Part shown: one piece after another, positions 40,801 to 59,899 of the stretch | Layout of the letters: each line of letters starts with the position of its first letter | How positions within the stretch are numbered: position 1 is the stretch's first letter | Source: Anthoceros angustus | Lineage: Eukaryota > Plantae > Anthocerotophyta | DNA length: 64,000 nucleotides | Assembly (NCBI GenBank): GCA_010909165.1 | Contig: VJWM01000025.1 | Location: forward strand, 2,294,001-2,358,000 | Reading direction: 5' to 3' | Position numbers and translations under genes: made by a program | Notes under the pieces: generated by a model | The model's input: the letters and a program-made list of their open reading frames with translations, nothing else | Databases searched by the model: none | Told to the model about the DNA's origin: nothing

Positions 40801-41006
40801 CTTGGTGCAGAACGTCTTAACACCCCTGTAGAGCTCACCAGTCAGCACTTCGCTACTCCAACAGCAACCGCATGAGCATAACCTCTAAGAGCCTACAGGC
40901 AGGCAGTGAGGAAATACCGTGTACTCGAGGTAGAAGTGGAACAAGGACTCTCCACCGGCACTTGCACCTTTACCCGCACATTCACACCAGCTTGCGTTAT
41001 CTTCAT
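37858..41006 (-). CDS. PLS-class PPR RNA-editing factor, E1/E2/E+ (PG box, no DYW)
   Basis: 996-codon open frame 40848-37858 of P-L-S triplets (VVSWTALIAGY, FVSALQAC, LVSMYAKCGS), WMCLLAACRKHGNVELG, QPGRSWIE; stops before DYW. Possible first exon MKITQAGVNVR 41006-40974 with intron 40973-40885 (tentative). Confidence 0.93.
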
Positions 41007-41528: not shown

Positions 41529-44500
41529 TTAGTAATACGGGTTGGGTGGAGGATATCCGGGTTGTCCATAAGATAGCCTGCTTCCTCCATATCCAGGCTG
41601 TTGGTGCTGGTCCTGCTGCTGGCCTGCATAGGATTGGTGCCCTGTCCACCCATAACTAGGTTGCTGATGATGCACAGGGGCAGATGGTTGCAGTGTCCAC
41701 GAGTAACCGGGGGGTTGTTGGACATACCCCTGGTAAGGCTGTGCTTGCTGAGGGGTAGACGGCAGCCATGGAGAGGTTGGTCTGTAGCCTTGCCTCGGAG
41801 GACCAACCACATACGGATTACTGTGTGCTTGAGCCTGCTGAGGCACACCCACCTCCGCATACCCTGAGTGGGGAGCCTGAGCCTGTTCATACCATGGTGC
41901 TGACTGCGCCTGTGGCTGACTGTATACCGGAGGATATAATCCAGGCTTGCTGTGGGATGATGTCGAATGTTGTCCGTAGTCAGGAGTTTGTGGCCTTTGC
42001 TGCTTGGGATAGTCGGAGGTGTGAGGCCGCTGCTGGCCATACTGAGGATCCTGCACCTTATACTTGCCATAATCAGAGGAGGGGGCTGAGGCACCATGGC
42101 CAGAGTCGACACCACTATGTGATGCAGGAGGATAGAGTGGAGGAGCTCCAGCATATTCTGGTGTCCAAGAGGAACTTGATGATTGCTGCTTCCGCTTCTC
42201 ATCCTTGACATGATCACTGCCGTACACATTTCCCAAGCGAGTGTTACCATAGCTGTAGTGACTCCCACTACTGGCAGGGGATGCTCCCTCGTAGGATGGC
42301 CCTGTCAAACCACCGGATGAAGTTGAAGCACTGAAACTCGGGGGCTTGCTAGGCGGATATGCTGGTTGCACCACTGGACGAGGGGGAGGATAGGTCGAAT
42401 TGTCAGTGTCAGAATTCGACCCACTTTCACTCTGAGACAACGGAGACACAGGTGGGGGCGTTTGGGCAATGGCACCTGGATGGGCTGGGTAAGGAGGATA
42501 GGCAGCTGAGACACTAGAAGGGGGGTACACATTTTGCGGAGGGTAAGGACTGTGAGGAGGATAGACACTATGGGGAGGATAAACACTTCCAAATTGAGAA
42601 CTGTCTGAAGGATGCAGTTCATCAGAAGGGGCGGATGGTACACCAAATGTGGGATGCATGGTAGGAGGGTAAGCTGGTTCAGAAGCCGCCAGTTTGTCAT
42701 CCCTTTCCTCCTTGAGTCTGTCTGTCTTTCCTTTCAGAGCCTCTTCCCGACGAGATGCAAGGACTGGAGGATAGGCAAGATAGGGGCTGAAAGGTGTTGG
42801 ACCAGTTTGGTGTTGCAACCGAGCAGAGGAATCAAGGTGCGTAAGAGAAGGTTTCTCCACTTCTTCACTATGTCCCTTTCCTTCCTGGATCCAGGCCGAC
42901 ACAGGCTGATCAGCGTGCCTTTGAAGAGAGCTAGAGCTAGACATATTCACAGACACTGGAGCAGAAGCGTTGTAGGAGTCGTGAATATTTTCTTGAGCAT
43001 CTCTTGGAGGCTTCTGTTTCTGCTTAACTTCATCCGCCTGCGTCACGACATAGTTTGCCTTTGATTCATCGTCACTGAGGCGATCGTGAGCCTGGGGACG
43101 ATGCACCAACTGGGCAACGTTTGGAGATGGCTGGGCGGACGCTCGGAAAGATGAAGCAATGCTAGCAGAGGCAAAAACATGTTGCTCATCTCCGTGCAAC
43201 AATCTCCCCTGAAAGTCATCGGCTGGCTGGTTTGTCCCCTCCACATCCTCATTGGCTGCAAACTCCTCTCTCGATTCCTTCATACTCAGAGCGCTTCGAA
43301 AACTCTGCCTTCGTGATTGAGCAGTTCCACCAAGCACTAAAACATTAGGGTGCCCTGGGTTCACGTCCGGCGGCCTCTCCAGTTGACCCTCCGCCTGTTG
43401 CTCCTTACTTTCTAGCTTTTCAGCTGATTGATCAGCGTGGAAAGGAGAACTGTCAACACCACCATTCTGTTCTTGATCCTCTACGTCTAGGGTGGTCTTC
43501 CTGCTGTCAAAGTCATGAAGGCTTGGGAAGCGTTTAACACCCGGGGGGACAGCTGGAACATAAGAAAGTTTGGCCTCTCCGCCACGCTGATCGTCAGGAA
43601 GCACATGCCCATATGCATCTGTCACAACTTGGGGAGAAGGTTGACCAAGATCACCGTACCCATACACGTAAGTTCCAGAAGCAGTGGCATGTGATGTCCT
43701 GTCTGTGTTTTCCTGATCTTTCACCTTCTTCACTTTCCCACTTCCAGGAGGGTTAGGTGCATATCCATACGAATCTAGGGAAACTTGAGGTTCCACAGGA
43801 ATGGACACACCCTGTGAGGAAGCTCCATACAATTCACTAGGCTTGTCCTGAGAAGGATCAATAATTGCTGGAGCAGTATTGACGGAAACTGGAGCAGGTT
43901 GACCAAGATCACCGTACCCATACACATCAATTCCAGAAGCAGTGGTATCTGATGTCCTGTCTGTGTTTACCTGATCTTCAGCAGTTCCATCAAGTACTAA
44001 AATGTTAGGGGGCCGTCGGTTCCCATCCTGCAGCCTTGCTAATTGAACCTCTACCTGTTGCTCCTTGCTTTCCAGCCTTTCAGCTGATTGATCACCATAG
44101 AAAGGAGAACTGTCAGTACTACCAGTCTGGTCTTGATCCCCTATGTCTAGGGTGGTCTTCCTGTTATCAAAGTCATGAAGGCTAGGGAAGCGTTTAACCT
44201 CCGGAGGGGCTTCCAGAACGTAGGATAGTTTGGCCTCTCCACCACGCTGAGCGTCAGGAGGCACATCACCATATACACCTGTCACAACATGGGATGAAGG
44301 TTGACCAAGATCACCGTACCCATACACATCATTTCCAGAAGCAGCACCACCTGATGTAGTGCTTTTGTTCACCTTTTCTTTCACCTTCTCTTTCACAGGT
44401 CTTTCACTTCCAGGAGGTTTAGGTGCATATCCGTTATCATCTAGGGGAACTTGAGGTTCCCCAGGAATGGACACGCCCTGTGAGGAAGCTCTTAACAATT

Positions 44501-47500
44501 CACCAAGCTTGTCCAGAGAACCGAACCCATACACATCAATTCCAGAACCAACGGCCTCTGATGTTGTGCTTTTGTTCACCTTATCGTTCAACTTTTCCTT
44601 CTTTTCCTTCTCCTTCACAGGTCTCTCACTTCCAGCAGGGTTAGGTGCATATCCGTTATCATCTAGGGGAACTTGAGGTTCCCCAGGAATGGACACGCCC
44701 TGTGAGGAAGCTCTTAACAATTCACCAAGCTTGTCCAGAGAACCAAACCCATACACATCAATTCCAAGGGCAGCCGCCTTTGATGTTGTGCTGTTGTTCA
44801 CCTTATCGTTCATCTTCTCCTTCTCCTTCTTCTCCTTCACAGGTTTCTCACTTCCAGCAGGGTTAGGTGCATATCCGTTACCATCTTGGGGGACTTGAGG
44901 TTCCCCAGGAATGGACACGCGCTGTGAGGAAGCTCTTAACAATTCACCAAGCTTGTCCAGAGAACCGAACCCATACACATCAATTCCAGAAGCAGCCGCC
45001 TCTGATGTTGTGCTGTTGTTCACCTTATCTTTCATCTTCTCCCTCTCCTTCTCCTCCTTCACAGGTCTCTCACTTCCAGGAGGGTTAAGTGCATATCCGT
45101 ACTCATCTAGGGGAACTTGAGGTTCCCCAGGAATGGACACGCGCTGTGAGGAAGCTCTTAACAATTCACCAAGCTTGACCAGAGAACCGAACCCATACAC
45201 ATCAATTCCAGAAGCAGCCGCCTCTGATGTTGTGCTGTTGTTCGCCTTATTTTTAATCTTCTCCTTTTCCTTCTTCTCCTTCACAGGCCTATCACTTCGA
45301 GGAGGGTTAGGTGCATATCCGTACTCATCTAGGGAAATTTGAGGTTCCCCAGGAATGGACACGCCCTGTGAGGAAGCTCTTAACAATTCACCAAGCTTGA
45401 CCAGAGAACCGAACCCATACACATCAATTCCAGAAGCAGCCGCCTCTGATGTTGTGCTGTTGTTCGCCTTATTTTTAATCTTCTCCTTTTCCTTCTTCTC
45501 CTTCACAGGCCTATCACTTCGAGGAGGGTTAGGTGCATATCCGTACTCATCTAGGGAAATTTGAGGTTCCCCAGGAATGGACACGCCCTGTGAGGAAGCT
45601 CCATACAATTCACCAGGCTTGTCCAGAGAATCGAACCCATACACATCAATACCAGAAGCAGCCGCCTCTGATGTTGTGCTGTTGGTCACCTTATTTTTTA
45701 TCTTCTCCTTCTCCTTTTTCTGCTTCACAGATCTCTCACTTCGAGGAGGGTTAGGTGCATATCCGTACACGTCAATTCCAGAAGCAGCGGCACCCGATGT
45801 CGAGCTTATGATCACCTTATCTTCCACCTTCTCCGTCTTCTCCTTCATAGGTCTCTCACGTCCAAGAGGGTTAGGTGCACATCCGTACTCATCTAGGGAA
45901 GCTTGAGGTTCCCCAGGAATGGACACGCCCTGTGAGGAAGCTCCACAAAATTCACCAGGCTTGTCCAAAGAACCGAACCCATACACATCAATTCCAGAAG
46001 CAGCGACCTCGGATGTGGTTGTTTCGTTCACCTCATCTTTCATCTTCGCCTTCTTCTCTTTCACAGGCCTCGCACTTCCAGGAGGGTTAGGTGCATATCC
46101 GTACTCATCTAGAGAAACTTGAGGTTCCTCGGGAACTTGGGGCTCCCCAGGAATGGATACGCTCTGTGAGGAAGCGCCGTACAATTCACCAGGTTTGTCC
46201 AGGGAACCGAACCCATACAAATCAATTCCAGAAGCAACGGCATCTAATGTCATGCTCTTGTTCAGCTTATCTTTCACCTTCTCCTTCTTCTCCTTCACAG
46301 GTTTCCCACTGCCAGGAGGGTTAGGCACATATCCGTACTCATCTAGGCGAACTTCAGGATCCCCAGGAATGGAAACGCCCTGTGAGGAAACTCCATACAC
46401 TTCACCAGGCTTGTCCCGAGAGTACGCATACACATCAATTCCAGAAGCAGCGGCATCTGATGCTGTGTTTTTGTTCACCTGGACTTTCACCTTCTCCTTC
46501 ACAGGTTTCCCACTTCCAGGAGGGTTAGGGGCATGTCTAAACTCATCCAGGGACACTGGAGGTTCCCCAGGAATTGACACCCCCTGTGAGGAAGCATACA
46601 ATTCACCAGGCTTGTCCCAAGAACCGTACCCATACACATCAATTCCACAACCAGCAGCATCTGATGTCGTGTTTTTGTTGACCGTATCTTTCACCTTCTC
46701 CTTCTTCTCCTTCACAGGTTTCCCTCTTCCAGGAGGCTTAGGTACATATCCGGAAGCATCTAGGGAAACTTGACGTTCCAAAGGAATGGACACGACCTGT
46801 TCCTCCTCCCCTGCAGTCCCCTCTGAATCAGCCGGCAGATTGAACAAGCTTGTCGGCTGATCAATGACTGGATCTGTTGAGGCGACAAAAGGTGCATGTA
46901 CAGCAGTGCTGTACAGTCGACTGACATTAGGAAGACGACGACCCGCAACCTCTAAATCATCATCTTCTCTACCCTTCGCTGGGTCTGTATCCAGTTCAGC
47001 TTCTAGTTCTGCAAGCTCCCTTTCAATGTCAGCGTCATCATCTGAATCGCCTTTTCCATGCAGTGGCATCATAGGGCTTTCCGTTTCCCCCTCTGGACGG
47101 ACCTGAACCTCACTGCCGTGCCCCAGCACCTGAGCACCCGGTTCGAAGCCGTGTGCGGAAAAAGTGCCTTCTTTCCCAGCAGACTCCGACACCGACAAGA
47201 ACGAGCTCGGATGATCCCACCGGTCCGAGTAGTCTTCACCCTCAGGCAGCTTCTGACCTGCAAAAGGTCCAAATGGAAATCCCGAAGTAGGGGGATCGTA
47301 CCCACGAGGAGGAGACAGAGCTTCTGCTTGCCTTAATTCACCCGATTGGACAAAGCTCTGCCTAACACCCTGGCGGACAGGCGCTCTGCGTGGCACCATA
47401 CTACCAAACTTAAGAAGAGCAGGATCGAAGCTAAAGCGAGGACCCGGCACACTTTCTGGAGGCTCATTCCGTGTCCTCTTTCCTTCATCCACAAGAGGGG

Positions 47501-48287
47501 CAGCTACAGAAGCTCCTTTCCTATCCTGCTGATCATCCTTGATCAACACCGCCGTTTCCTCCTCCAACTCCTTGTCTCTCATTTTCTCCACACCACGGAC
47601 AGTGGCCTCAGGTTCACGTGAAGAAGCAGTTTCATGCTGCTCATATCTCTGCTCTTGCTCGACATCATGCCTTTCCTCATACCCTCCTTGTCCAGCCACT
47701 TCCACTTCATGCCCACTAGCTGCAGGCAAATACACAAGTCCTTCCACCCGATTCCTACTCTTGGCCTCGTCAAGGACCTTAGAATGCACGGCATCCACTC
47801 CTTCCCGAAAAGAGGAGCTAGCTGCCCTGTCCCTCCCATCATCCCCAAGCCTTTTCCGCCTCTCCTTTCCCGACTCCTCAATACTTTCTTCCTCACGCTG
47901 GAAGGCAGCAGGACGAGGAGAAGACACACTTGGCCGCCGTCCCTGAGCAAGCAGCCGAGACTGGCTGAGCTGCTCGAAACTAGGCGGGAACTGAGGCTTG
48001 GCTCTGGCCGGAAGCTCTTTCTGCAGATCTTGCAGCTCAGGGAAGGAAAGAGATGGATTGGTGTAGGTAGGCCCCTTCCCAGGTTCGCACTCGCCATCGG
48101 ACGAATCCGAGCCCGCTGCTGCTGCTGCACTGGGATCCTGTCCATTCCTCGTCGCCTCCTTGGACTCTTCACCTTCAGAGTCATCCCACTCCGAGTCGTC
48201 CGACACGGTATCGGCAAGTAAGCTCAGATTTTGATGAAACGCATCCAGCTTGCGACGGAAGTCTGTGGCCCCTCCCCCGTCCCCCAT
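41529..48287 (-). CDS. Giant intronless low-complexity repeat protein A (about 2252 aa from the first ATG)
   Basis: Uninterrupted 6.8-kb frame (the ORF track starts at TTG 48422; first ATG 48287). Acidic N-terminus, 74-aa tandem repeats, P/Q/Y/S-rich C-terminus. No recognised domain. Confidence 0.8.
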   Translation of the reverse strand: MGDGGGATDFRRKLDAFHQNLSLLADTVSDDSEWDDSEGEESKEATRNGQDPSAAAAAGSDSSDGECEPGKGPTYTNPSLSFPELQDLQKELPARAKPQFPPSFEQLSQSRLLAQGRRPSVSSPRPAAFQREEESIEESGKERRKRLGDDGRDRAASSSFREGVDAVHSKVLDEAKSRNRVEGLVYLPAASGHEVEVAGQGGYEERHDVEQEQRYEQHETASSREPEATVRGVEKMRDKELEEETAVLIKDDQQDRKGASVAAPLVDEGKRTRNEPPESVPGPRFSFDPALLKFGSMVPRRAPVRQGVRQSFVQSGELRQAEALSPPRGYDPPTSGFPFGPFAGQKLPEGEDYSDRWDHPSSFLSVSESAGKEGTFSAHGFEPGAQVLGHGSEVQVRPEGETESPMMPLHGKGDSDDDADIERELAELEAELDTDPAKGREDDDLEVAGRRLPNVSRLYSTAVHAPFVASTDPVIDQPTSLFNLPADSEGTAGEEEQVVSIPLERQVSLDASGYVPKPPGRGKPVKEKKEKVKDTVNKNTTSDAAGCGIDVYGYGSWDKPGELYASSQGVSIPGEPPVSLDEFRHAPNPPGSGKPVKEKVKVQVNKNTASDAAASGIDVYAYSRDKPGEVYGVSSQGVSIPGDPEVRLDEYGYVPNPPGSGKPVKEKKEKVKDKLNKSMTLDAVASGIDLYGFGSLDKPGELYGASSQSVSIPGEPQVPEEPQVSLDEYGYAPNPPGSARPVKEKKAKMKDEVNETTTSEVAASGIDVYGFGSLDKPGEFCGASSQGVSIPGEPQASLDEYGCAPNPLGRERPMKEKTEKVEDKVIISSTSGAAASGIDVYGYAPNPPRSERSVKQKKEKEKIKNKVTNSTTSEAAASGIDVYGFDSLDKPGELYGASSQGVSIPGEPQISLDEYGYAPNPPRSDRPVKEKKEKEKIKNKANNSTTSEAAASGIDVYGFGSLVKLGELLRASSQGVSIPGEPQISLDEYGYAPNPPRSDRPVKEKKEKEKIKNKANNSTTSEAAASGIDVYGFGSLVKLGELLRASSQRVSIPGEPQVPLDEYGYALNPPGSERPVKEEKEREKMKDKVNNSTTSEAAASGIDVYGFGSLDKLGELLRASSQRVSIPGEPQVPQDGNGYAPNPAGSEKPVKEKKEKEKMNDKVNNSTTSKAAALGIDVYGFGSLDKLGELLRASSQGVSIPGEPQVPLDDNGYAPNPAGSERPVKEKEKKEKLNDKVNKSTTSEAVGSGIDVYGFGSLDKLGELLRASSQGVSIPGEPQVPLDDNGYAPKPPGSERPVKEKVKEKVNKSTTSGGAASGNDVYGYGDLGQPSSHVVTGVYGDVPPDAQRGGEAKLSYVLEAPPEVKRFPSLHDFDNRKTTLDIGDQDQTGSTDSSPFYGDQSAERLESKEQQVEVQLARLQDGNRRPPNILVLDGTAEDQVNTDRTSDTTASGIDVYGYGDLGQPAPVSVNTAPAIIDPSQDKPSELYGASSQGVSIPVEPQVSLDSYGYAPNPPGSGKVKKVKDQENTDRTSHATASGTYVYGYGDLGQPSPQVVTDAYGHVLPDDQRGGEAKLSYVPAVPPGVKRFPSLHDFDSRKTTLDVEDQEQNGGVDSSPFHADQSAEKLESKEQQAEGQLERPPDVNPGHPNVLVLGGTAQSRRQSFRSALSMKESREEFAANEDVEGTNQPADDFQGRLLHGDEQHVFASASIASSFRASAQPSPNVAQLVHRPQAHDRLSDDESKANYVVTQADEVKQKQKPPRDAQENIHDSYNASAPVSVNMSSSSSLQRHADQPVSAWIQEGKGHSEEVEKPSLTHLDSSARLQHQTGPTPFSPYLAYPPVLASRREEALKGKTDRLKEERDDKLAASEPAYPPTMHPTFGVPSAPSDELHPSDSSQFGSVYPPHSVYPPHSPYPPQNVYPPSSVSAAYPPYPAHPGAIAQTPPPVSPLSQSESGSNSDTDNSTYPPPRPVVQPAYPPSKPPSFSASTSSGGLTGPSYEGASPASSGSHYSYGNTRLGNVYGSDHVKDEKRKQQSSSSSWTPEYAGAPPLYPPASHSGVDSGHGASAPSSDYGKYKVQDPQYGQQRPHTSDYPKQQRPQTPDYGQHSTSSHSKPGLYPPVYSQPQAQSAPWYEQAQAPHSGYAEVGVPQQAQAHSNPYVVGPPRQGYRPTSPWLPSTPQQAQPYQGYVQQPPGYSWTLQPSAPVHHQQPSYGWTGHQSYAGQQQDQHQQPGYGGSRLSYGQPGYPPPNPYY
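44330..46770 (-). repeat. Coding tandem repeat of about 222 bp (74 aa), about 11 copies
   Basis: Unit GIDVYGFGSLDKPGELYGASSQGVSIPGEPQVSLDEYGYAPNPPGSERPVKEKKEK..DKVNNSTTSEAAAS; copies at 45133-45354 and 45355-45576 are nearly identical. Confidence 0.95.
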
Positions 48288-49984
48288 GTCCAAGCCCTGC
48301 GCTCCCTCTTGGATATAAGTCCTGAACGGAATGGAATGTTTGTCAATCACACCCACAAGGGCACAGCCTGGAGCCCCATCCAAAGCGCCCACTTCACAAT
48401 CAAAGCAAAGCCAACAAAACAAGGTGGGATGGGACTGCGTACGAGCATATCGACTTGCGAGTCGCGAATTCTTGGCGGCTTCGAGGCTCCCGGAACGATG
48501 CTTCTGGACAGCACGCCAACAGTCTCTCTCCTATTCAAGGATTATAACAGGATAATACCGTAGTATCATCCGACACATCCTGCTCGACAATGTTATTATA
48601 CGTCCGCTTTGACAATTTTATTATGTAACGGTCTAAGCTTCCCTGCCTTGCCTGCTCTTACAATGTCTAACCTTCCCTCCCTCGAGGTTTGCCATTGCAC
48701 AGCTGCATAGTTCATTTATGACAATAAATGGCCAGGGCTATGTTGCTTGAAGCTTGAGGTGATGTCCCTAAATATACTACCCTCTCTACGATTGAGTTGG
48801 TGTGATCCTTCTTTCTATGCTTTTTCTGAGTTACGCAGCCAGTCATTTGGCTGAGATGCATGAAATGTGCGGTATTGGACTCCTCCAATATGCCGGTCTA
48901 TGCAATGGAAGGGAGCGCTAAAACACTTCCTCGTTGTAGGTGTTAGCCTCTATTCCTCTGCGAGTGAGGCCTGCGCAAACATCACCTAAGTCTCCAGTCT
49001 CCAGTCTCCACATTTGTATAGCTATACAAACAGGTTCACACACACAAAAACTGCAAAAGATTGTGACAAGGAAGCCCGGATTTAATTAATGAAAAGCACA
49101 CCGTTCCAGTAACCGGCAAATGCAAACACCTTGGTTGTGCTAGAGGCTAGCACTATCCATAGCCAGTCCTGTTTTTCCTTGAGTGTGAGAAATGCCATTA
49201 GAACTTCGTTAACCTAGATATCAGATACATGTACTAAAAGGTAGCAAACGATGCAAGAGACCATTTCGAGTTCCTATTGCGAATGTCCGGCCAGTCTTTT
49301 CCTGATGCCTGAGCAATTTTGTTTGTTTTTTCTAAGACATCTCTATTCTGTATGTGTGCAAAGCAGTGAGCCTACATAGGTATATATGACGAGATGCCGG
49401 CACACTAGCCACAGATATGGCACACAACATAGGTATATACATCTGGCACACTAGCCATAGATATGGCACATTGCAACAAACTTGGCAGAATGGGGCATGA
49501 CAGATATCCTCTTGTCTCAGGTATGTAGAACTCTGTCACAAGTATATGTGTATTTCTACTTAGTACATTTCATACATATATCATATGAATATGCGTACCT
49601 TACACGTATACTTGTTGCTTATTAGCATATGGAGGTTTATGGAGAAAAATTGCATATCTCGAAACATTATCAAGTCATCAAGTCTGTGTGCACCATACTG
49701 GTTGCATAAAGAGTTGAACATTGTCCATTCAAGGTAAAATCATTTGTAAATAACTTTTTATCCTACCATAAATAAAACATATTTATGGAGAATAGTGGCA
49801 TATATCGTGCTTTAGCAAATCTTGTTTTAAGATATCTTATGTTATTACACTAAGGTGATCAGTCCCTAATTATGGTACCATGTGCTTAAAATTTATAGTG
49901 CATTTATATGCGACAACCTTTTCGGTCTTGCCATCTGCTATGGTCTTTGATTGTGTATGATACCTTCTTTTTATCTTCTATACC

Positions 49985-50160
49985 ACCTTTGTGGACTTTT
50001 GCCACTTTATGCACTTTTTCTTATGCTACGTTTGTGGACTTTTTCATATGCCATCTTTGTGGACTTTTTCTTATGCCATCTTTGTGGACTTTTTCTTATG
50101 CCATCTTTGTAGTCTTTTCTTATGCGACCTTTCCAGTCTTCTCTTGTGCCATCTTAGTGG
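49985..50160. repeat. Degenerate repeat of about 25-29 bp, about 5 copies
   Basis: TTTGTGGACTTTTTCTTATGCCATC recurring. Confidence 0.85.
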
Positions 50161-50165
50161 AATTT

Positions 50166-50400
50166 CACGAGGTGCGGTCTAGTATCAGAAGAACGTCGTA
50201 TCGACGAAACCTTAGAATATAGGAAGTTCGATAATGACACCGAGCACGAGGAAAAGGAGAGTATGGGATATCCTACGTACACAGATGACTTGCTCGACCA
50301 TGCTAGCCTAACCACTTGCATTCACACTATAGGCGCAAAGGAAAAATGGGTTGCATCCACACTACGGAACGGGAATGCACGGGTTCCCAATCATGATGGC
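50166..50400 (+). pseudogene. Truncated duplicate of the TFIIB-like sequence (source about 51566-51803)
   Basis: GGTGCGGTCTAGT..AGAAGAACGTCGTAT.GACGAAACCTT.GAATA...GACCATGCTAGCCTAACCACTTGCATTCACACT...AATCATGA. Confidence 0.9.
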
Positions 50401-50568
50401 TGTTAGGGTTATCTATTTAACCTACCTCATTTATTTATGTTTAAGGTTATGAACACGTCGCTTTGTACTTAAGAACATTTTTGGTTTTCATTAATTTATT
50501 AAATTGTCTCGTGCACTTATGTTCTTGAGAGAAGACTTCCGTGCATAAAAGAAACATGGTATCAGACC
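50401..50568 (+). mobile_element. Short LTR (TG...CA) followed by a tRNA-iMet primer-binding site
   Basis: TGTTAGGG at 50401 exactly where the TFIIB homology stops; ...AGAAACA at 50556, then TGGTATCAGA; no second LTR found. Confidence 0.6.
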
Positions 50569-51039
50569 TACCAAACATCTATGGCTAGTAATGTTGGTGT
50601 AGCTACTACCATTGTGCACAGCACCTCATAGTCCTTATCACAAGGATGAGAGATAGTGTGCCCAATGTATTTCTTTCCATGCACATTTCGCCATAGGTTA
50701 ATTGGTCCTAGCCTCAATGCTACTCTCTAATGCTGAGAGTCTACATGCTCCTACTCACGCGGAATGCCTCGTAGAGGATGTCCACAACCCGATTGGCCCA
50801 CATGCGACCTCTTGTGGAACACAAAAGTTTGAGTCACTGGATCAAGTGGGTTCATTTTGAAACAGTCCCAATTTCTTTTGGTCAGGAAGGATCTGCAGGG
50901 AATGTGTCTGAACTTTTTGGTTCTTTTGGACTTGGAGTTGTAGGATAGCATTAGGAAGGAAGGTAGGAAGCTTAGAGAAAAGGAAACGTAGCAAAATGGC
51001 CTTGAGGAGAGGAGGGTAGGTGCCTAACGTAGTTGGTAT

Positions 51040-51120
51040 GTCGGCACCTACCATCGTAGGTCGGTATCTACCATCGTAGGGCTGCACCTACTACGGTAGG
51101 TAGCAACCTACGGGCGTAGG
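51040..51120. repeat. Short palindromic repeat cluster
   Basis: Four CCTAC-N4-GTAGG-like units (e.g. CCTACCATCGTAGG). Confidence 0.7.
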
Positions 51121-51462
51121 TTGTTCGAGTATGGAACATGGTAGGGTGACTACATATGTGATCAGTGGGCTGATTAGGATAAATAAGTCCTAAATAGAGG
51201 AATTAGAGGTAATTTTAGATAATTAGGATAAATCTGGTCATTAGGATAATTACATAAAATGAAAACTTGGGTATATAAACGAGGGATGTGACTTACATAT
51301 ATTCATAAATATTGGACAAGCCTCTTAGAAGGTCTCAAGGGCAAGGTCACTGTCGAATCTTTTCCCGTTTGAAAAACAATCATTGTGCTTAATCACTCAT
51401 TATCAAAAACCCTCGTCGGTTCAAGATTTCAGGGCTAGTTATTCCATTTTTTTAATTATCTC

Positions 51463-52427
51463 ATGACAGCCGAGAATATGGACGTCAACTATCCAGAGTG
51501 CAAGTTTAAGATAGAGATTCGTGAGGACAGCAAGTCTGAAGATAGCAAGTCTGGAGACAGCATTTGCACAGGGTGCGGTCTAGTGTTAGAAGAACGTCGT
51601 ATTGACGAAACCTTGGAATACAGAAAGTTCGATAATGACACCGAGCATGAGGAAAAGGAGCGTGTGGGACGTCCTACGTACACGGATGACTTGCTCGACC
51701 ATGCTAGCCTAACCACTTGCATTCACACTGCAGGCACAAAGGAAAAATGGGTTGCATCCACATTGCGAAACGTGAATGCACAGGTTCCTAATCATGACAG
51801 CGGCTTGATATTTGCTTTTGATATGATTTCAGAGCTCGGAGAAAGAATGAGAATTGTGCACAACACGCAGGTATTGGCAAGTTCCTTGTACAAGAAGCTG
51901 ACGGGCTTGAGAAAAGGGAGTTTTGAAGAGACTCGTATGGCTGCTCCTATGTATATGGCTTGTAAAAAAGAAGGGACTCCTCGGTTGGGAAGTTGGTGGA
52001 CCTCCTAGAAATGAAGGCCGTGCATGACAAGCCGCGTACCTAAGGAAATCTGCCATGCGCATCCAAAGCTGTCCGGCCCAAGGATTTTGCAGCGCGGTTT
52101 TGTTCTAGGCTCGAAATGCGTAAGGAAAGTGTGAGAGCTATCTTTCAGGCACTGAGTGCCCTTGAAAAACAAAAATTCGATAGCCGAAGCTTGCCACAAT
52201 CGGTCACCGCCGGAGTTATATACATGGTTTGTAAGATTTCAGGGGAACCGTGCAACTCACTCAAGAGCATTGCCGAGGCATGTAATGTGGCGGTGAGTAC
52301 GCTCAAGAACACTTACGAGATTTTGCTTCCACATGCAGCATCCGTTATAGTACCGGCATGGTTTTTGCAAAGTGAGAATTTTTGTTTGGAAGAGCTCAGG
52401 ACTCGAGCCTTAGATTATGCATCGTGA
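51463..52427 (+). pseudogene. TFIIB: Intronless TFIIB-like pseudogene
   Basis: Zn ribbon YPEC...GDSICTGCGLVLEERRIDE..EYRKF (first Cys replaced by Tyr). Cyclin repeats AAPMYMACKKEGTPR and DFAARFCSRLEM...SVTAGVIYMV...SIAEACNVAVSTLKNTY. Frameshift near 51985 and in-frame TAA at 52041. Confidence 0.88.
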
Positions 52428-52851
52428 ACTTGCCTTCAATCACATAGCTCAGCTATGTGCTTTCGATTCATATACTAGCATGCAGCATGGTCAGTGACAA
52501 CATCCAATGATCATCACCATGCATATGTACTTGCAAATCCTTTTGTAGGAACAAATGCAAGCAAAGCATTTGAAATTTAAAAAAAATAAAAATATTTATG
52601 TTAAATCCTATTTTTTTTCAAAAAAATAATTATTTCGACATTACCCTGTTCAACCACCCCTCGGGGTACGGTAGTGGATTCATATGTAATGGCCGACGGG
52701 TGTGTAAAGGCCGCCTCGACAATGTCTAACTTCTGCCTTGCCTCGAGCTGCATCGTTCATTTATGACAATCTTGATTTATCAGCAAGTCTATCTACAATT
52801 CTGGACGAGATTTTCCCTTGTGTTCAATATGATAAAGGTCCATGACCATTA

Positions 52852-53386
52852 TTACCATAGGTCATACGAGGAAGAATCGAAGTTGCCTTGGTCATACGAG
52901 GAAGCATCGAAGCCGCCCTGGTCATACGAGGAAGCACCGAAGCCGCCCAAATCGAGGCTGATGTCGAAACTTTGGCTCTGGCTCTGGTCTTGGCCCTGGT
53001 CGTAATACTGATCGAAGCCCCCTTGATTGTACTGGTCATAACTATGGCCCTGGTCGTAACTCTGGGTCTGGTAGTAGCTCTGGGTGTTTCCATGACTCTG
53101 GAGGTAGCTCTGCTGATCATAGTGTGTCTGGGTCTGGAGATCACTGTAACTTTCGCTTGAAGAATAGAGGCCTGTGTTCTGAGTGTTGTCGTAGCCTTGT
53201 GGAAATTGCATCTGGTTGCTGCTAGTGTCGGAACCTTGCTGCATTTGCCACTGGTTGGTGCTGTTGTCCATGCCTGGCTGAGGTTGCATCTGGTTGCTGT
53301 TATTGTCCATGCCTGGCTGCGGTTGGGTCGGGTTGCTGTTGTTCCCCATGCCTTGATTGCTGCTGTTGTTGTTCTGCCATAGCCTC

Positions 53387-53421
<35 letters not shown>

Positions 53422-56400
53422 GTTATTACCCATCTGGAAAGCTCCTCCAAATAGAGGCAGTTGCTGTTGGTTGCTGGTTGCCGTGGCCAATGAATCCAAC
53501 GGGCCTGGTCTTTGCCCATATCCCACTTGTTGTGGCCTGCCCTGCATTCCCCCGGGTGGCTGCTGTCCCCTGCCAAATGGTTGAGGTTGCGGGACTTGAG
53601 ACGGTGCTCGTATCTGCCGTGACCCTGCATAACCTGCCTGCAGTGGCTGACTCTGAGGCTGCACTCCCATCCCAGGACCAGCAGCCCGCTGGTAAGGCTG
53701 CCCCTGGGACTGCCCCGTCATTCCAGGACCAGGCTGCTGCGGGTACGCTACTTGACTTCCACGGCCCACAGATCCTTGCTGTTGCTGATACCCTGGTTGT
53801 TGCCCTGTGGATCCAAAGCTGGGCTGCGGCTGCGGCTGCTGGAAGGATGGCGGTGGATCCCCATACCCCAGGTCGCGGGATTGTACCTGTGGCTGCTGTG
53901 GAATGGCCTTAGGCCTGTACGGCCCTCTTCCTGGAATCGCTTGCTGAATCACGGTCTGAGCTGAATATCCTGCGCCTACACCAGGACCTTGTGGTGTTTG
54001 CCCTGCCTGCAAAGTCTGAGGCTGGGTGTACAGATGTGGAGATGGCGCTGAGTGTACAGCCTTGTTCAGGTAGGCATGCACGGGTGGTCCCCTCGGCTGG
54101 ACATGAGAGGGAACCTGAGGAACAGGGGCACCATAGTGGGGACGAGGCAACACCTGCTGTTGACCCACAAACTGAGGGGGCGTGTGAGGACGGGGCTGAC
54201 CCAGAAACTGAGGGGGCGTCTGGGGCTTGCCCTGAGGAGGATGACTGTAGGGTGCTGTGGAAGCCTGCATGGGTGCTGCCCGCTCCGAAGGTGCTGTCCA
54301 GACCTGTGGAGGAGTTTTAACTCGTTGGACAGTCTGCCCAGAGGGAGGCTGCCCATGTCCTTGCACAGGTTGTCCCTGCCACGCCGTCCGCGAGCCGGAA
54401 ACGCTGACACCTGGAGGAGGTCGGGGCATTCCCGGATGCAAACCTTGAGCACCTGCAGCTTGAATGTGTACCAAGGGGTTTAGCTGCCCACCGGCGGCAT
54501 ATCCTGCCGGGCCATACACCTGCCCTGGTCCATATCCATGAGAGCCGGGCTGTGGATTCCCATAAACTTGATCAGCAGCTCGGGCCTCCTTGTCCTTCTT
54601 TTTCTTCTCCTTCTTCGCCTTCACCTTCTCCTCAGTACCATATCCCAGAGGAACAGGACCACTTGAGCTAGCATCAACCGGCGTTGCTGATGGGGCACCA
54701 TACATGAGATGCATCGCATAAGCAGCAGGATCATGTATTGGCTGCACAACTGGAGGAGGCCCATCAGTTCCGTATCCAGCAACTGAAGACGCACTTGCAC
54801 TCTTCTCTTTCTTTTCTTTCTTGTCTTTCTTTTTCTCCTTGACTGGCTCATTGCTGTACACAACTCCCTGGCTCAGGCCTGGTTGATGTCCTACACTGCC
54901 AGGGGCCAAGGAGCCCTGCAATGGCGTCCCATGCATCGAAGGAGGGTAGTGGTACCCGGGCCCAGCCGCATGCACATGCCCTGCATGGTCAACATAGCTT
55001 GCTGGAGGTTTATGCACAGCAATGGGTGCCTGCCCAGGGGGACCATATTGCTGAGGAAGGGGGTTGCCGTACATATCCGTCGGCACACTCTGATTCACGT
55101 TCTCTCCATCCTTGGATTTGTCCTTAGACTTGTCCTTCTTCTCTTTCTTTTTCTCCGCCAAAGGCTCAGGTGGGTAACCATGTATCTGAGGAGCCTGCCC
55201 AGGGGGACCATATTGCTGAGGAAGGGGATTGCCATACATGTCCGTCGACACACTCTCATGTACCTGCTCTCCATCCTTGGACTTGACCTTCTTCTCTTTC
55301 TTTTTCTCCGCCACGGGCTCAGGTGGATAACCATGTATCTGAGGTGCCTGCCCAGGGGGACCATATTGTTGAGGAAGGGGATTGCCATACATGTCCGTCG
55401 ACACACTCTCATATACCTGCTCTCCATCCTTGGACTTGACCTTCTTCTCTTTCTTTTTCTCCGCCACGGGCTCAGGTGGATAACCATGTATCTGAGGTGC
55501 CTGCCCAGGGGGACCATATTGCTGAGGAAGGGGATTGCCATACGTATCCGTCGACACACTCTCATACACATACACCTGCTCTCCATCCTTGGACTTGTCC
55601 TTCTTCTCTTTCTTTTTCTCCGCCACGGGCCCAGGTGGATAACCATATATCTGAGGTGCCTGCCCAAGGGGACCATATTGCTGAGGAAGGGGATTGCCAT
55701 ACAGATCCGTCGACACACTGTGATTCACCTTCTCTCCATCCTTGGACTTGTCCTTCTTCTCTTTCTTTTTCTCCGCCACAGGCTGAGGTGGATAACCATG
55801 TACCTGAGGTGCCTGCCCAGGGGGACCGTATTGCTGAGGAAGGGGATTGCCATACATATCCGTCGACACACTCTGATTCACCTTGTCTCCATCCTTGGAC
55901 TTGTCCTTCTTCTCTTTCTTTTTCTCCGCCACAGGCTGAGGAGGATAACCATGTACCTGAGGTGGAGTGGAAGGTGGCACAGGTCCCTGAGGAGCTTGCC
56001 ACGAATTGACTCCAGAGTCAACGTCGCCCTTCGCATGCTTTTCACCCTTGTCCTTCCCGTCCTTCTTCTTTCCCTTGATAGACTCCGTATCGGATGCCAC
56101 TCCCTGATCAGGCACTCCTGGGTATGTTCTCTCATCTGGAGGTACAAACGGAAATCCATGAGGAGGTGGGTGGTAACCAGAGGGTGGTGAAAGAGCACTT
56201 GCTTGCTTAGGCTTCTCCTGGAATTCAACGTCAATTCTCGGCTCCCCATTCCTCACAGGCTCGGTAGGAGGATTGTAACTGCCATGCACGGGCGAGGGAG
56301 CTCCTGCTTGCTCTGCAAGAGATCTTGTCAGCTGCTCCGTTACTGGGACATGCCCAGACCCATACACGTCCGGGGACGGGTGAGGAGCATCTGATATGTT

Positions 56401-57630
56401 ATGCTCCTTCTTCTTCTTGTCCTTCACCTTCTCCTTCTCGGGAGGAGGGGCAGCATAGCCATATCCATCGCCATCCGGAAGAGCTTGGCCCTGAGGCCAG
56501 CTCACATTCGGAGGAGCTTGCCACTGAGCTACGTAACCAGTCGGAGCAGGAGGGTCCTCCTCATGGCTGTCGTCGCTATTGTCCATCTTCTTTTCCTTCT
56601 TCTGCTTACCCATGTACGGCACATGCTGAGGAGCTTCAGCACCATACGCATACCCCACATGGGGCACCTGGGCGGCATCCACGCCATAAGCATACCCCAC
56701 AGGAACCTGAGCAGCAGGGTAAGAACCTTGATCCAGCCCCGCATCAGCGCCCTTCACCTTATCCTTCTTCTTCTTCTTCTTCTCCTTCACCTTCTCCTTC
56801 TCCTTCTCCTTCTCCGATCCTGAGTCACTGTCCCTCCCTTCCTCTTTGACCTTATCCTTCTTCTTCGACTTCTCCTTTAGCTTCTCCACGACGACATCCC
56901 TGGTGACCGTCCCAGCTGGATCAACCGAAGCCCCATATCCATAAACAGGGACAAAGGATCCGGCTTGGCCTGATGCCTGATACTGGCCGGCCTGCTGAAA
57001 GGGCACACCTTGCGGAGGAGGCCCAGGATACTGCTGATAGTAAGGTTGTCCATAAGCAGCATTTGCAGCACCCACGTTCCCACCTTCCTGCTGCTCCTTG
57101 CTTTCGCCCTTCTTCTTAGCCTTCTTATCCTCTCCTTCATCCTTGCTCTTCTTAGCCTTCTTATCCTCGCCTTCATCCTTGCCCTCCTTCTTCTTCTCCG
57201 TGTCCTCTTTCACTTTGTCCTTCTTCTTGCCCTTTTTCTTACCGTCAGAGTCATCCGAGGAGTCGGACCAATCAGAGCTTAACACCGTGCACGACGCGGA
57301 GCTATCCTCGTTTTGGTCCTGCTGCTCCTGCCTTAGGCCGTTCTGCCACACCTCTTGCTGCTCTTGCGCAAAGTGACCGGGATACTGGAAGACTTGGGCC
57401 CCTGCATTCTGATCTGATCCATACTGGGTCCCGGCCTCATGCACGCGGCTCTCTTCCAAGGGCTGCCCTGCTTCACACTGCTCCTGGGCGTAGCAGTACG
57501 CTTGGTAATCCCCAGGGAGGCCCTCATGCTGCTGGTACACCCCCTGCTGGTAATCCTCATGCTGATGGTACGCCTCCTGCTGGTACACCTCCTGCTGATA
57601 CTCCTCCTGGTACTCACCACCTTCTTCCAT
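52852..57630 (-). CDS. Giant intronless low-complexity repeat protein B (about 1592 aa from the first ATG)
   Basis: Uninterrupted 4.8-kb frame (the ORF track starts at GTG 57675; first ATG 57630). E/Q/Y-rich N-terminus, K/E blocks, 51-53-aa repeats, Q/P/G/Y prion-like C-terminus with polyQ and a 3x SSYDQG repeat. Probable 5' UTR intron donor near 57850. Confidence 0.8.
55030..55950 (-). repeat. Coding tandem repeat of about 153-159 bp, 6 copies
   Basis: Unit SVSTDMYGNPLPQQYGPPGQAPQIHGYPPEPVAEKKKEKKDKSKDGE(K/Q)V. Confidence 0.95.
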
Positions 57631-59899
57631 TTCAGAGCCAAGGCAACCTCCTCCGGATCCGTTCCTGCGCAGCACGCACTGGCATCATGAACACGGGCAA
57701 GCATCGAAGTATGCATTGCTGGCTAGCAAAGCATACATGGGTCAACAACACCACCCATCTGCCACAGCATGAGGCCATGTACGTGCAGGACTAACCAGGA
57801 TGGCACAACGCACGAATGAGCAAGCGAAGCTCCTTCGCAGCAGCAACTCACGTCTGCCACGCCCCGAGATTCCTACACCGCGCGACGGGGAGACAGGGGA
57901 GGAAGAACGCCGCCCAATTCAGCTCCTTGGAAGCAACCTTCAGGCACACGAGACTGAGGAGACCCGTGTTGCTTCGCTGCTTGAACTGCAGGGAGGATTG
58001 CAGCGATGCAACGCAGGGCCGGGACCGAAGGCTCTAATCTGTGAGGACGCTGGAGGAGACGGCAATCCCCGGCCCGGGAATGCGAGTACGCGACAGCAGG
58101 CACTTCGAAGAAACAAGGCTCCCGAATACCGATGCAAAGGCAAGCGAGGAAGAGGCATCTCCGTTGATAGAGCCTTGGGTTGAAGTCTTCAACTCGAGGG
58201 ATGAGACGAGCTGAGAAAGAGAGAAGCCTTCAACTTCAAGGCTGAGAAGCTGAGCAAGGGAACAGCTTGCCAGAGGCGGGGCCCGCCACCACAGTGGCAT
58301 GGCATGTTGAGCCATCTCTCTTCTCCGTGCCTCCCGCTTTCCTCCATCGTACAAAGGTCGGTACCGATCTCATCTGCGAGGGATATGTGCTGTACGTACG
58401 TACACGCACGTTGAACTGCGCATTGACGCGGTGGGACTGGGTCGCGGCGCCTCTGCTTCCTGGCACGAGCTGCCGTCCTACCGTCCTGCCGTCCTGCCGT
58501 CCTGCCGTACTGGATTTTTTCAGTGAATTCGGAGATTTTATAGATATTTTAAAATGTTAAATTATTTTTTAAATTTAAAGAATTTATAGATATTTAAGTC
58601 TCCATCTAAGTTTCACACAATAAGGGCATAATGTTTATAATAAGGGGCTCCGTAGTGTAGTATTAGATGATTTGTAGCAAGAGTAGAAAAATATGATTCT
58701 AGAATCATATCCTTGTGTCATGCTATTGACCCTATATTTAACTATGCAGGCCTATCATTTAACACCATTTAAACATGGCATCTAGGTACTAAAAACTAAG
58801 AGAAAATCTTAGAAGTGATAATGTTGTTTCTATATATGTGTGTCCAAAGTTATAAGAAGATAATGTTATTCTAAAGTTTTTTCCAAGAGTTGATATCTTC
58901 TTAGTTTGCTTGTATGTAGTTTAGCTTCCTTGTTAATGCTTGCGAAGTGAAGCTCATCGTTGTTCAGAAGCATGATACAGGTTCAACAATTGTGTACCTT
59001 CTCTATTTCAAAGTTATGTCAGATACCTAATAGGTTAGAAAAAGACACGAACCAGAAGTATGCCGAGGCCAAACTTGTAAAGTGATACGCGGAGGCTAAA
59101 CCTATAAAGTGATAATTGCAGAACATTCAGCCAACTTTGTTTGCAAAGCTCTAAGTAAGTGACTTCTACCTCCTATTACTTGCTTTTGAACGGACTTCAG
59201 TCATTAGCCAAAGCAACCTAGTAGCAACAATGTGCACAACACAAGCCAAATCAAGCCTCTCAAAATAATGTCTAAGTTAAAACAAGTTAAGACAAGTTAA
59301 CTTGTTTAAGACAAATTATTTCTTTGAACATTTCTTTTTAGTAACCTTGAATAATTCCTTATGACTCTTCTTAATTTTACTTAACAACTACGTCTATTTG
59401 AATACAAACTAGGTACTATATGCCCAGTGTTGGAGGCATGTACTACATATGAATAAGAAAAACTCACCAATAAGATGCTCTAGGGATTTGCAATAATTAA
59501 TTTATAAATTATTTTAGTAACGTAGAGAAATCTAATTGGAAAGATAATTAGGAAAGTAGAAGAAGAAGAAGAATTTTATTTAAGTCCACTAAGAACGGAT
59601 TTCCGTCATGGGACTTGATACTTAACAACTTGTACCATTGTGTGCCTAAGATACTTGCACCAAGGGCATCCACTCCCTATAGACACCCCATTTAAGTACC
59701 GATCTAAGCTCAGGATGCTTAATCACGGTGTTCTTAGTCCATTTGGCCTAAGCCATTAGGTATTAAGCACTAGGTAATGGGAAAATATGAACGGGACGAT
59801 AAGTACCGACCGATAGAGCACTTTAGAAGTCTGTATGTCATGTTAGAGTCATAACATACAGCTGGAGGGCAAAGTTCCGTCATAACCGCACTTTGTGCA

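Follow-up and report, generated by a model that had tools for sequence, protein, structure and literature searches.

What kind of protein is encoded by two very long open reading frames on the minus strand of a 64,000-nucleotide stretch of hornwort DNA (the window), and are the two related to one another? The sequence-only reading had described same-strand single-exon frames of about 2250 and 1590 amino acids. The frames, their strand and their lengths are as described, but "single-exon" is true of the coding part alone, as each gene may carry an intron in its 5'-untranslated region (Table 1). We refer to the larger gene and its product as p1 and to the smaller as p2. The open frame of p1 extends over 2297 codons (41529–48422) with the first ATG at 48287, and that of p2 over 1607 codons (52852–57675) with the first ATG at 57630. 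The putative upstream exons were translated singly; if the putative acceptor is used, their frame runs into a stop in p1, and in p2 it offers no ATG past the last stop. Since the frames upstream are closed, these ATG codons are the likely starts.

Table 1. Features of the two genes and their products, by position in the window.
Feature	Coordinates	Strand	Remarks
p1 coding sequence	41529..48287	-	2252 aa plus stop from first ATG; ~242 kDa; pI 5.1
p1 tail	41532..42650	-	aa 1880–2252; Pro/Ser/Gln/Tyr-rich, low-charge
Second duplicated p1 unit, copy 2	43260..43661	-	~115 aa common; coordinates give the 134 aa aligned
Isolated twelfth copy of p1 unit	43584..43805	-	aa 1495–1568
Second duplicated p1 unit, copy 1	43920..44321	-	~115 aa common; coordinates give the 134 aa aligned
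p1 array	44250..46790	-	aa 500–1346; 11 contiguous units of 68–114 aa
p1 copy of motif	47265..47330	-	aa 320–341; QAEALSPPRGYDPPTSGFPFGP
Putative 5'-UTR intron of p1	48322..48661	-	sole upstream GTRAG donor, 48661; CAG/GA acceptor 34 nt before ATG
p2 coding sequence	52852..57630	-	1592 aa plus stop from first ATG; ~172 kDa; pI 6.5
p2 tail	52855..54513	-	aa 1040–1592; Gln/Pro/Gly-rich, low-charge, with polyQ run
p2 array	55030..55953	-	aa 560–867; six units of 51–53 aa
p2 copy of motif	56140..56205	-	aa 476–497; QASALSPPSGYHPPPHGFPFVP; 5 nt from the position first reported
Decayed p2 module	56359..56469	-	aa 388–424; DGYGYAAPPPEKEKVKDKKKK...DVYG; upstream of p2 array; best match to p1 unit profile
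Putative 5'-UTR intron of p2	57665..57851	-	GTGAGT donor, 57851; CAG/GA acceptor 34 nt before ATG

Both frames have every appearance of real protein-coding genes. There are no in-frame stops in p1, against 61–178 in the other five frames, and none in p2, against 20–101 in the others. The non-repeat halves of the two genes (495–722 codons each) are likewise stop-free, with 8–49 stops in the other frames there. All periods reported by TRF in p1 and p2 are multiples of three (153, 204, 222, 234, 312 and 465). Among the older units of p1 the dN/dS ratio is 0.48–0.60 at a dS of about 0.3–0.4. A ratio of about 0.5 in such duplicates is moderate constraint only, and the value of about 1 for the youngest p1 repeat units comes from very few differences.

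The two proteins share a motif of 22 residues, ALSPPxGYxPPxxGFPFxP, located upstream of the repeat arrays. Its region provides the sole significant BLASTP match between p1 and p2 (48 aa, 52% identity, E 4e-6), and its Smith-Waterman score of 120 compares with 62–69 +/- 11 for local shuffles (z 4.4–5.3), the motif score being reached by 1/300, 0/300 and 0/300 of these. The claim that the motif is common to both proteins thus withstands comparison with local shuffles. That it is "also similar at DNA level" stands in a weak form: mean column identity is 77% over an alignment of 101 columns that takes in the motif with its flanks, but blastn at E 0.01 did not find the motif between the genes. As read from the alignment, different codons are used at 7 of the 15 identical residues. 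The motif is kept under purifying selection in both genes, and it outlived a duplication old enough to wipe out nearly all other similarity between p1 and p2. To our knowledge it fits none of the WW, SH3, GYF, EVH1, PAM2, LIR/AIM or MAPK FxFP consensus patterns, a comparison made by eye and offered as a lead only.

Because the motif is conserved with many synonymous differences, the parts of both proteins run in the same order, and a common repeat module is recovered by reciprocal profiles, p1 and p2 can be regarded as old paralogues of each other, and the paralogy suggested in the sequence-only reading is supported. Not all that was put forward for this relationship could be retained. The early acidic patch around a tryptophan (TV..S(E/D)W.DS) is at chance level as evidence of homology, 592 of 1000 local shuffles scoring as well. 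The occurrence of an acceptor 34 nt before the ATG in both genes was likewise rejected as evidence of paralogy, since AG dinucleotides occur so often that the common spacing carries no weight. Homology of the gene flanks was also rejected, only low-complexity DNA of the lysine blocks and one 25-nt match being found. Searching the window by tblastn with p1 and p2 gave no third copy.

The repeats account for about 40% of the length of p1 and 20% of that of p2. The six youngest p1 units, of 222 nt (74 aa), are 93% identical, while the dS of older units is about 0.3; the two copies of the second, ~115-aa unit of p1 share 62% identity (dN/dS 0.47 at dS 0.43). The p2 unit measures 153 nt (51 aa; a single variant has 53 aa), and each contains HGYPPxP, an EKKKEKK block and TD(M/L/T)YGNPL, which resembles the Y-segment of dehydrins. 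Each gene had been thought to have expanded a different unit (74 aa versus 51–53 aa). The lengths do differ, but the units are not unrelated, for the 74-aa and 51-aa units have in common a module in which YGY-Pro is followed by a KEKKEK block, VN-Ser/Thr and D-x-YG. A hidden Markov model of the p1 unit matches p2 in one register (sum of positive scores 58 versus a shuffle maximum of 22.9) and the reciprocal p2-unit model gives 55.4 versus 9.4 against p1; these sums overstate the homology of the module because repeat copies are not independent, and the best single matches, 12.0 and 11.5 bits, are narrowly above the shuffle maxima of 10.2 and 9.3. The 12.0-bit match of the p1 model lies outside the p2 array, and 0 of 200 local shuffles reach it. 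The p2 model likewise matches p1 in register, again with 0 of 200 shuffles doing as well. Both proteins appear to be built from one ancestral module of ~40–70 residues, in which an aromatic-Gly-Pro patch (YGY-P-x-P-P) led into a Lys/Glu block (KEKKEK), a Ser/Thr-rich VN-S-T linker and another D-x-YG site; separately in the two genes, this module has gone through amplification, decay and renewed amplification. With decayed old modules flanking recent, 93%-identical arrays, the proposal of evolution by repeat turnover is well supported.

Both products are predicted to be giant, almost wholly disordered proteins with neither a signal nor a transit peptide. Their GRAVY values are -0.9 (p1) and -1.24 (p2), and AlphaFold2 produced isolated helices only (pTM 0.14–0.19) and no confident fold for the ~115-aa duplicated unit of p1 (pLDDT 53). 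Acidic in both proteins, the N-termini lack hydrophobic character and any likeness to a transit peptide; p2 starts with MEEGGEYQEEYQQE. The dipeptide YG is enriched (z 10.5 in p1, 6.6 in p2), and YG/GY remain so outside the arrays (z 2.2–3.6). Lysine and arginine together account for 4.2% (p1) and 4.0% (p2) of the tails, where aromatic residues are spaced more evenly than in shuffles (z -2.5 and -1.9). The sticker-spacer composition and the Gln/Pro/Tyr-rich tails noticed at first sight are accordingly found, by composition, in both proteins. Matches to K(K/R)x(K/R) number 10 in p1 and 19 in p2.

No domain was found by Pfam in p1 or p2; a PDB sequence search gave only spurious repeat-on-repeat matches to polyubiquitin with no passing stretch, and the ESM Atlas no usable match for p1 residues 1–500 or the whole of p2, in agreement with the earlier remark that no known domain is recognised; nor does any described family match. 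Phmmer with p1 residues 1–650 against 1.84 billion representative proteins returned 0 matches, with the query itself absent too. Word-index protein searches with p2 residues 1–560 and p1 residues 1–480 gave no relative among the 8000 candidates listed, which low-complexity words filled, nor did metagenome scans with the motif alignment and with the p1 N-terminus detect one; orthologues of p1 and p2 were found in none of the collections searched. As a control, a PPR gene of the window was run against the same protein library and had no match above 50% identity. The library thus lacks the genome of this species, and the missing relatives, on which the term "lineage-specific" of the sequence-only reading depends, are for that reason weak evidence.

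We favour the view, to which we would assign a probability of about one half, that p1 and p2 are disordered scaffolds of the Tyr-Gly sticker type, nucleocytoplasmic and restricted to their lineage. A nucleocytoplasmic location would fit the many K-K/R-x-K/R blocks, which resemble nuclear localisation signals. The proteins would act as multivalent scaffolds in which, judging from composition, the Tyr-Gly stickers and the prion-like tail could bring about weak, condensate-type self-association, while the Lys/Glu blocks might bind acidic partners (nucleic acids, membranes or tubulin tails) electrostatically. The conserved motif may dock one specific folded partner, possibly under regulation at its Ser-Pro site. 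Low-charge tails, evenly spaced aromatic residues and YG/GY enrichment together give both proteins a FUS-like composition. As in FUS-type low-complexity or prion-like domains with [G/S]Y[G/S] stickers, a functional class rather than a family, tyrosine is preferentially flanked by glycine, the low-charge tails are rich in Gln, Ser, Gly and Pro with aromatic residues evenly spaced, and the chain is predicted to be disordered. Unlike FUS-type proteins, p1 and p2 possess no RNA-binding or other folded domain, and KEKK blocks give their central part a high charge where that of the FUS type is uncharged. Nor are they homologous to it in sequence, the likeness being one of composition.

The main rival to this scaffold reading is a dehydrin-like protectant role. 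On that account the two giant proteins would either be related, in highly altered form, to Y(n)K(n) dehydrins or LEA proteins or resemble them through convergence, and they would accumulate under dehydration or cold, protecting membranes and proteins through hydrophilic Lys-rich and Tyr-Gly segments; we take it seriously while thinking it unlikely. Like dehydrins (LEA group 2, PF00257; Y(n)K(n) with internal repeats), p1 and p2 are very hydrophilic, disordered and modular, with Tyr-Gly sites alternating with Lys-rich blocks, and have evolved by tandem repetition, which is common in dehydrins, proteins that bryophytes also have (PMC11763121). The six TD(M/L/T)YGNPL copies of p2 agree in 7 of 8 residues with TDEYGNP(V/I), the extended consensus of the Y-segment (PMC11763121); they score 36–38 out of 46, which 0 of 500 local shuffles reach, so this accessory feature of dehydrins is present in p2, though the likeness was first spotted by eye and is hence post hoc. 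As D-x-YG is the general sticker of both proteins, the YGNP form may be a variant that arose by chance and was then amplified sixfold. The p1 units contain LDEYGY, but LDEYGYAP is not above chance as a Y-segment (102 of 500 shuffles as good). In p2 an acidic Ser patch stands directly before KKKGKKKDKVK, recalling the S-then-K order of dehydrins; checked for a tract of 4–8 Ser followed by acidic residues, p2 shows SSDWSDSSDDSDG and then KKKGKKK with no unbroken Ser tract, and p1 shows SDDSEWDDSEGEE. The K-segment, obligatory in any dehydrin (PMC5415607) and in its canonical form EKKGIMDKIKEKLPG, with Lys and conserved hydrophobic positions, is absent: against four published K-segments the best windows score 32 in p1 and 28 in p2, of a possible 77, and 28/500 and 215/500 local shuffles equal them. 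The Lys blocks do not have the hydrophobic positions behind the amphipathic helix of the K-segment, and pieces of p1 and p2 gave no match to PF00257 even at E 10. Also unlike dehydrins, the proteins have long Gln/Pro/Tyr prion-like tails and the ALSPPxGYxPPxxGFPF motif unknown in that group, and at 172–242 kDa they are far above the quoted upper size of 70 kDa (PMC5415607), or three or more times as large.

It might also be argued that the frames are weakly constrained or non-functional, being young lineage-restricted proto-genes or decaying genes with little or no product, and that they persist mainly since much of their length consists of recently amplified repeats free of stops. The lack of any relative or fragment of p1 residues 1–650, the word searches with p1 and p2, empty among the matches listed, and the dN/dS of about 1 in the youngest units would agree with this. 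We nevertheless regard it as rather improbable: the non-repeat halves are stop-free too, duplicates at dS 0.3–0.4 show a dN/dS of about 0.5, the motif outlasted an old duplication with many of its differences synonymous, and absent matches say little, given the control. A very improbable alternative is that p1 and p2 are secreted structural proteins of the wall or mucilage, akin to repetitive proline-rich proteins or hydroxyproline-rich glycoproteins, cross-linked through Tyr and Lys and with a signal peptide on an unrecognised upstream exon. At 10–12% Pro, and with short repeats that also contain Tyr and Lys (YGYPPQP, YPPHSVYPP), they loosely recall PPVYK-type wall proteins, and the possible intron ending upstream of each ATG could leave room for the exon. 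Translation from the first ATG gives acidic N-termini with no hydrophobic core, however, and the upstream exon frames are closed by the stop (p1) or without an ATG after the last one (p2). Moreover, there are no SPPPP or PPVYK repeats and no match to an extensin or PRP Pfam family, and long polyQ, Gln-rich tails and KEKK blocks are atypical of wall proteins. Hornworts being a pyrenoid-bearing lineage, evenly spaced repeats of 51–74 aa in a disordered protein also bring to mind a chloroplast condensate linker, that is, a multivalent scaffold for Rubisco or the pyrenoid in the manner of EPYC1, but this seems to us scarcely credible. Short, regularly spaced stickers in units of ~50–75 residues on a disordered chain are shared with the repeat-based linkers EPYC1, CsLinker and PYCO1, the spacer intervals being ~50 residues in EPYC1 and CsLinker (PMC13655443). 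Unlike these, p1 and p2 have no plastid targeting (no transit peptide, acidic N-termini) and no Rubisco-binding motif, their pI of 5.1 and 6.5 is acidic to neutral and not strongly basic, and repeats are a minority of their length, compared with the tandem-repeat content of 0.8 required in a screen of A. agrestis for EPYC1 analogues (bioRxiv 10.1101/2024.06.24.596764). In hornworts the part of Rubisco linker has meanwhile been attributed to RbcS-STAR (PMC13655443).

To return to the Tyr-Gly scaffold, p1 and p2, if expressed, would offer a clean natural example of disordered-protein evolution, with one sticker/Lys-block module repeatedly amplified and decayed in two paralogues and a single 22-residue motif held constant while the rest drifted beyond recognition. 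As hornworts are now transformable (PMC10952725), localisation and knock-out tests are feasible. The function of the Y-segment is still given as unknown (PMC5415607), and the near-canonical Y-segments of p2, without a K-segment, could help test what it does. One might go further and suppose, as something of a long shot, that p1 and p2 represent a hornwort family of giant scaffolds having Y-segments without the K-segment, D-E/x-Y-G-N-P being one form of a general Tyr-Gly sticker. If this were true, the Y-segment would have originated outside dehydrins as a module of self-association, or would also exist there as one, and this long-unexplained segment would gain a testable function; ALSPPxGYxPPxxGFPF would be a new site at which a conserved partner docks.

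Two descriptions of the neighbourhood need amending. The frames had been described as single-exon in an otherwise intron-rich region; intronless genes are not exceptional there, because nearby PPR genes are intronless too. They had also been called a tandem pair, which is correct as to strand but not as to strict adjacency, since a TFIIB-like gene (51463–52427), transcribed from the plus strand, sits between p1 and p2.

The window is nuclear DNA of a land plant, and the two same-strand frames of about 2250 and 1590 aa proposed from sequence alone are both present on its minus strand (ORF1 and ORF2), specifying the giant disordered proteins p1 (2252 aa) and p2 (1592 aa). As described, they form a pair on one strand within the window, but they are not strictly adjacent, since a plus-strand TFIIB-like gene intervenes. 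The pentatricopeptide-type (PPR) neighbour beside p1 lacks a DYW domain; its best database relatives are only 31–50% identical, so for this gene the database covers neither the present species nor a near relative.

Features of the p1–p2 locus (window coordinates unless stated)
Feature	Position	Strand	Description
PPR neighbour	37858-40848	-	PLS-class, E motif, intronless; ~680 nt downstream of p1 stop
ORF1	41529-48422	-	2297 codons
p1	first ATG 48287	-	2252 aa, ~242 kDa, pI 5.1
Duplicated p1 unit, ~115 aa	43920-44321, 43260-43661		two copies, 62% identity
GTRAG donors	48661 (p1), 57851 (p2)		single, upstream of each ATG
25-nt match	48701-48725, 52746-52770		CATAAATGAAC.ATGCAGCT..., 96% identity
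Minisatellite, 25 nt	49996-50165		~7 copies, 80% matches
Direct repeat, 234 nt	50163-50396, 51564-51797		90% identity, 1401 nt apart
TFIIB-like gene	51463-52427	+	between p1 and p2; Zn-ribbon + cyclin repeats
ORF2	52852-57675	-	1607 codons
p2	first ATG 57630	-	1592 aa, ~172 kDa, pI 6.5
p2 end	52860-52948	-	last 30 residues
Decayed p2 module	p2 aa 388-424		DGYGYAAPPPEKEKVKDKKKK...DVYG; upstream of p2 array, found with p1-unit profile

In BLASTP a single stretch of 48 residues aligned significantly between p1 and p2 (52% identity, E 4e-6); it ends in QAEALSPPRGYDPPTSGFPFGP in p1 and QASALSPPSGYHPPPHGFPFVP in p2. The N-terminal parts had a Smith-Waterman score of 120, against 62–69 ± 11 for shuffles preserving local composition (z 4.4–5.3); that score was attained by 1, 0 and 0 shuffles in three sets of 300. 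The shared motif ALSPPxGYxPPxxGFPFxP, on which the sequence-only reading had leaned, is thus significant against composition-keeping shuffles. Its reported likeness at the DNA level amounts to a mean column identity of 77% over 101 columns (motif plus flanks), but blastn did not recover it. In this alignment different codons specify seven of the 15 identical motif residues, as expected if the genes duplicated long ago and purifying selection has since acted on the peptide. An acidic patch, TV..S(E/D)W.DS, had also been advanced as a likeness and must be dropped, 592 of 1000 local shuffles aligning equally well. The paralogy, supported by the motif together with the repeat module common to both proteins, is real, and the original observation is largely right.

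The p1 unit (74 aa) occurs in 12 copies in all and the p2 unit (51–53 aa) in six. The suggestion that each gene amplified a different unit is correct as to length, but both units have the same internal order, namely YGY-P-x-P-P, (P)V-x-EKKKEK... (the Lys block), K-VN-x-S-x-S/T and D-x-YG, and their profiles match reciprocally. The p1-unit profile matched p2 13 times in a single register, best at the decayed module (12.0 bits). Its positive scores summed to 58, against a maximum of 22.9 among 200 shuffles made within 15-residue windows, and those of the reciprocal search to 55.4 against 9.4, sums which overstate the case because repeat copies are not independent; the best single matches exceed all shuffles narrowly (12.0 vs 10.2 and 11.5 vs 9.3). 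Both proteins thus appear to be assembled from repeated copies of a single ancestral module, in which older, degenerate copies flank a recent expansion (93% identical). This supports the proposed evolution by repeat turnover.

No Pfam family was matched by the whole proteins or by seven pieces at E up to 10, in agreement with the earlier failure to recognize a domain; a PDB sequence search yielded spurious matches only, and the ESM Atlas nothing usable. AlphaFold2, a weak test with one or two input sequences, gave no fold: p1 1–500 had a pTM of 0.19, with isolated helices at 6–29, 127–178, 206–258 and 416–432, and the ~115-aa duplicated unit a pLDDT of 53. Both proteins are strongly hydrophilic (GRAVY -0.9 and -1.24). 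Their acidic N-termini (MGDGGGATDFRRK... and MEEGGEYQEEYQQE...) and K(K/R)x(K/R) matches (10 and 19) suggest that they are nucleocytoplasmic. Tyr-Gly adjacency is far above compositional expectation (YG z 10.5 in p1, 6.6 in p2), and persists outside the arrays (z 2.3–3.6). The low-charge Gln/Pro/Ser/Gly tails show aromatic spacing evener than shuffles (z -2.5 and -1.9), owing partly to short internal repeats there. In prion-like domains evenly spaced aromatics accompany liquid-like self-association.

Word searches, two metagenome scans and an exhaustive phmmer search of p1 residues 1–650 against 1.84 billion representatives (0 matches) found no relatives, nor was a third copy found within the window. 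Since the PPR neighbour, used as control, had no protein above 50% identity in the searched library, this species' genome is not in it, and the absence of relatives is weak evidence.

Neither coding region has an in-frame stop, as against 61–178 (p1) and 20–101 (p2) in the other five frames. Four non-array parts (495, 642, 545 and 722 codons) are likewise stop-free, with 8–49 stops in every other frame, so repeats free of stops do not by themselves account for the open frames. TRF detected only tandem-repeat periods divisible by three (153, 204, 222, 234, 312 and 465). Older p1 units gave dN/dS 0.48–0.60 at dS 0.31–0.44, and the ~115-aa unit 0.47 at dS 0.43; the youngest have too few differences for the ratio to be informative. 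Codon usage correlates modestly with that of the PPR neighbour (RSCU r 0.35–0.43). We conclude that p1 and p2 are genuine coding sequences, or were until very recently, and that the constraint on them is moderate, which is usual for disordered proteins; that they are weakly constrained or unused ORFs seems unlikely.

Their function we infer from sequence. Most likely, at a probability of about one half, they are lineage-restricted nucleocytoplasmic disordered scaffolds, which would be stacked from the Tyr-Gly sticker/Lys-block module and would carry the conserved shared motif as a docking site. A role as dehydrin-like protectants is conceivable though doubtful. Every p2 unit holds TD(M/L/T)YGNPL, which agrees at 7 of 8 positions with the extended Y-segment of dehydrins, TDEYGNP(V/I) (PMC11763121), and scores 36–38 of 46 against it, a value reached by none of 500 local shuffles; p1 units hold LDEYGY. 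Unlike dehydrins, of which the K-segment is the defining feature (PMC5415607), p1 and p2 lack this segment (best windows 32 and 28 of 77, no better than shuffles) and do not match PF00257, which rules out membership of the family. They may work like dehydrins, or share only the Tyr-Gly sticker, in YGNP form in one amplified unit. Evenly spaced 50–75-residue repeats in a hornwort protein also recall the Rubisco linkers of a pyrenoid, a most improbable identity here: a transit peptide is absent, the proteins are acidic to neutral, repeats make up only 20–40% of them against the 0.8 demanded in a published A. agrestis screen (bioRxiv 10.1101/2024.06.24.596764), and the condensation of Rubisco in hornworts is currently attributed to RbcS-STAR (PMC13655443).

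In both genes a CAG|GA acceptor lies at the same distance, 34 nt, upstream of the ATG, a coincidence which proves nothing as AG dinucleotides are too common; with the GTRAG donors, a putative 5'-UTR intron in each is plausible only. With this acceptor phase the upstream exon frame, translated singly, runs into a stop in p1 and is without an ATG after the last stop in p2, so that the ATGs in the table are the likely starts. A hidden signal or transit peptide is thus not indicated for either protein.

In the TFIIB-like gene the zinc ribbon (PF08271, E 7e-10) matches its profile only from position 13 onward, and the TFIIB cyclin repeats are represented by two pieces lying on two ORFs; the gene is therefore spliced or else broken. 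The 234-nt direct repeat copies part of its first coding region, which suggests a partial upstream pseudo-copy. The spacer between the p1 and p2 genes is AT-richer and holds the minisatellite. The 25-nt match, which occurs upstream of the p1 ATG and again shortly after the p2 stop, may be the remnant of a shared regulatory element or of a transposon. At the end of p2 a 10-residue acidic-aromatic unit, GGFDASSYDQ, occurs three times over the last 30 residues and the C-terminus reads ...YDLW; this end of the protein is a possible docking peptide.
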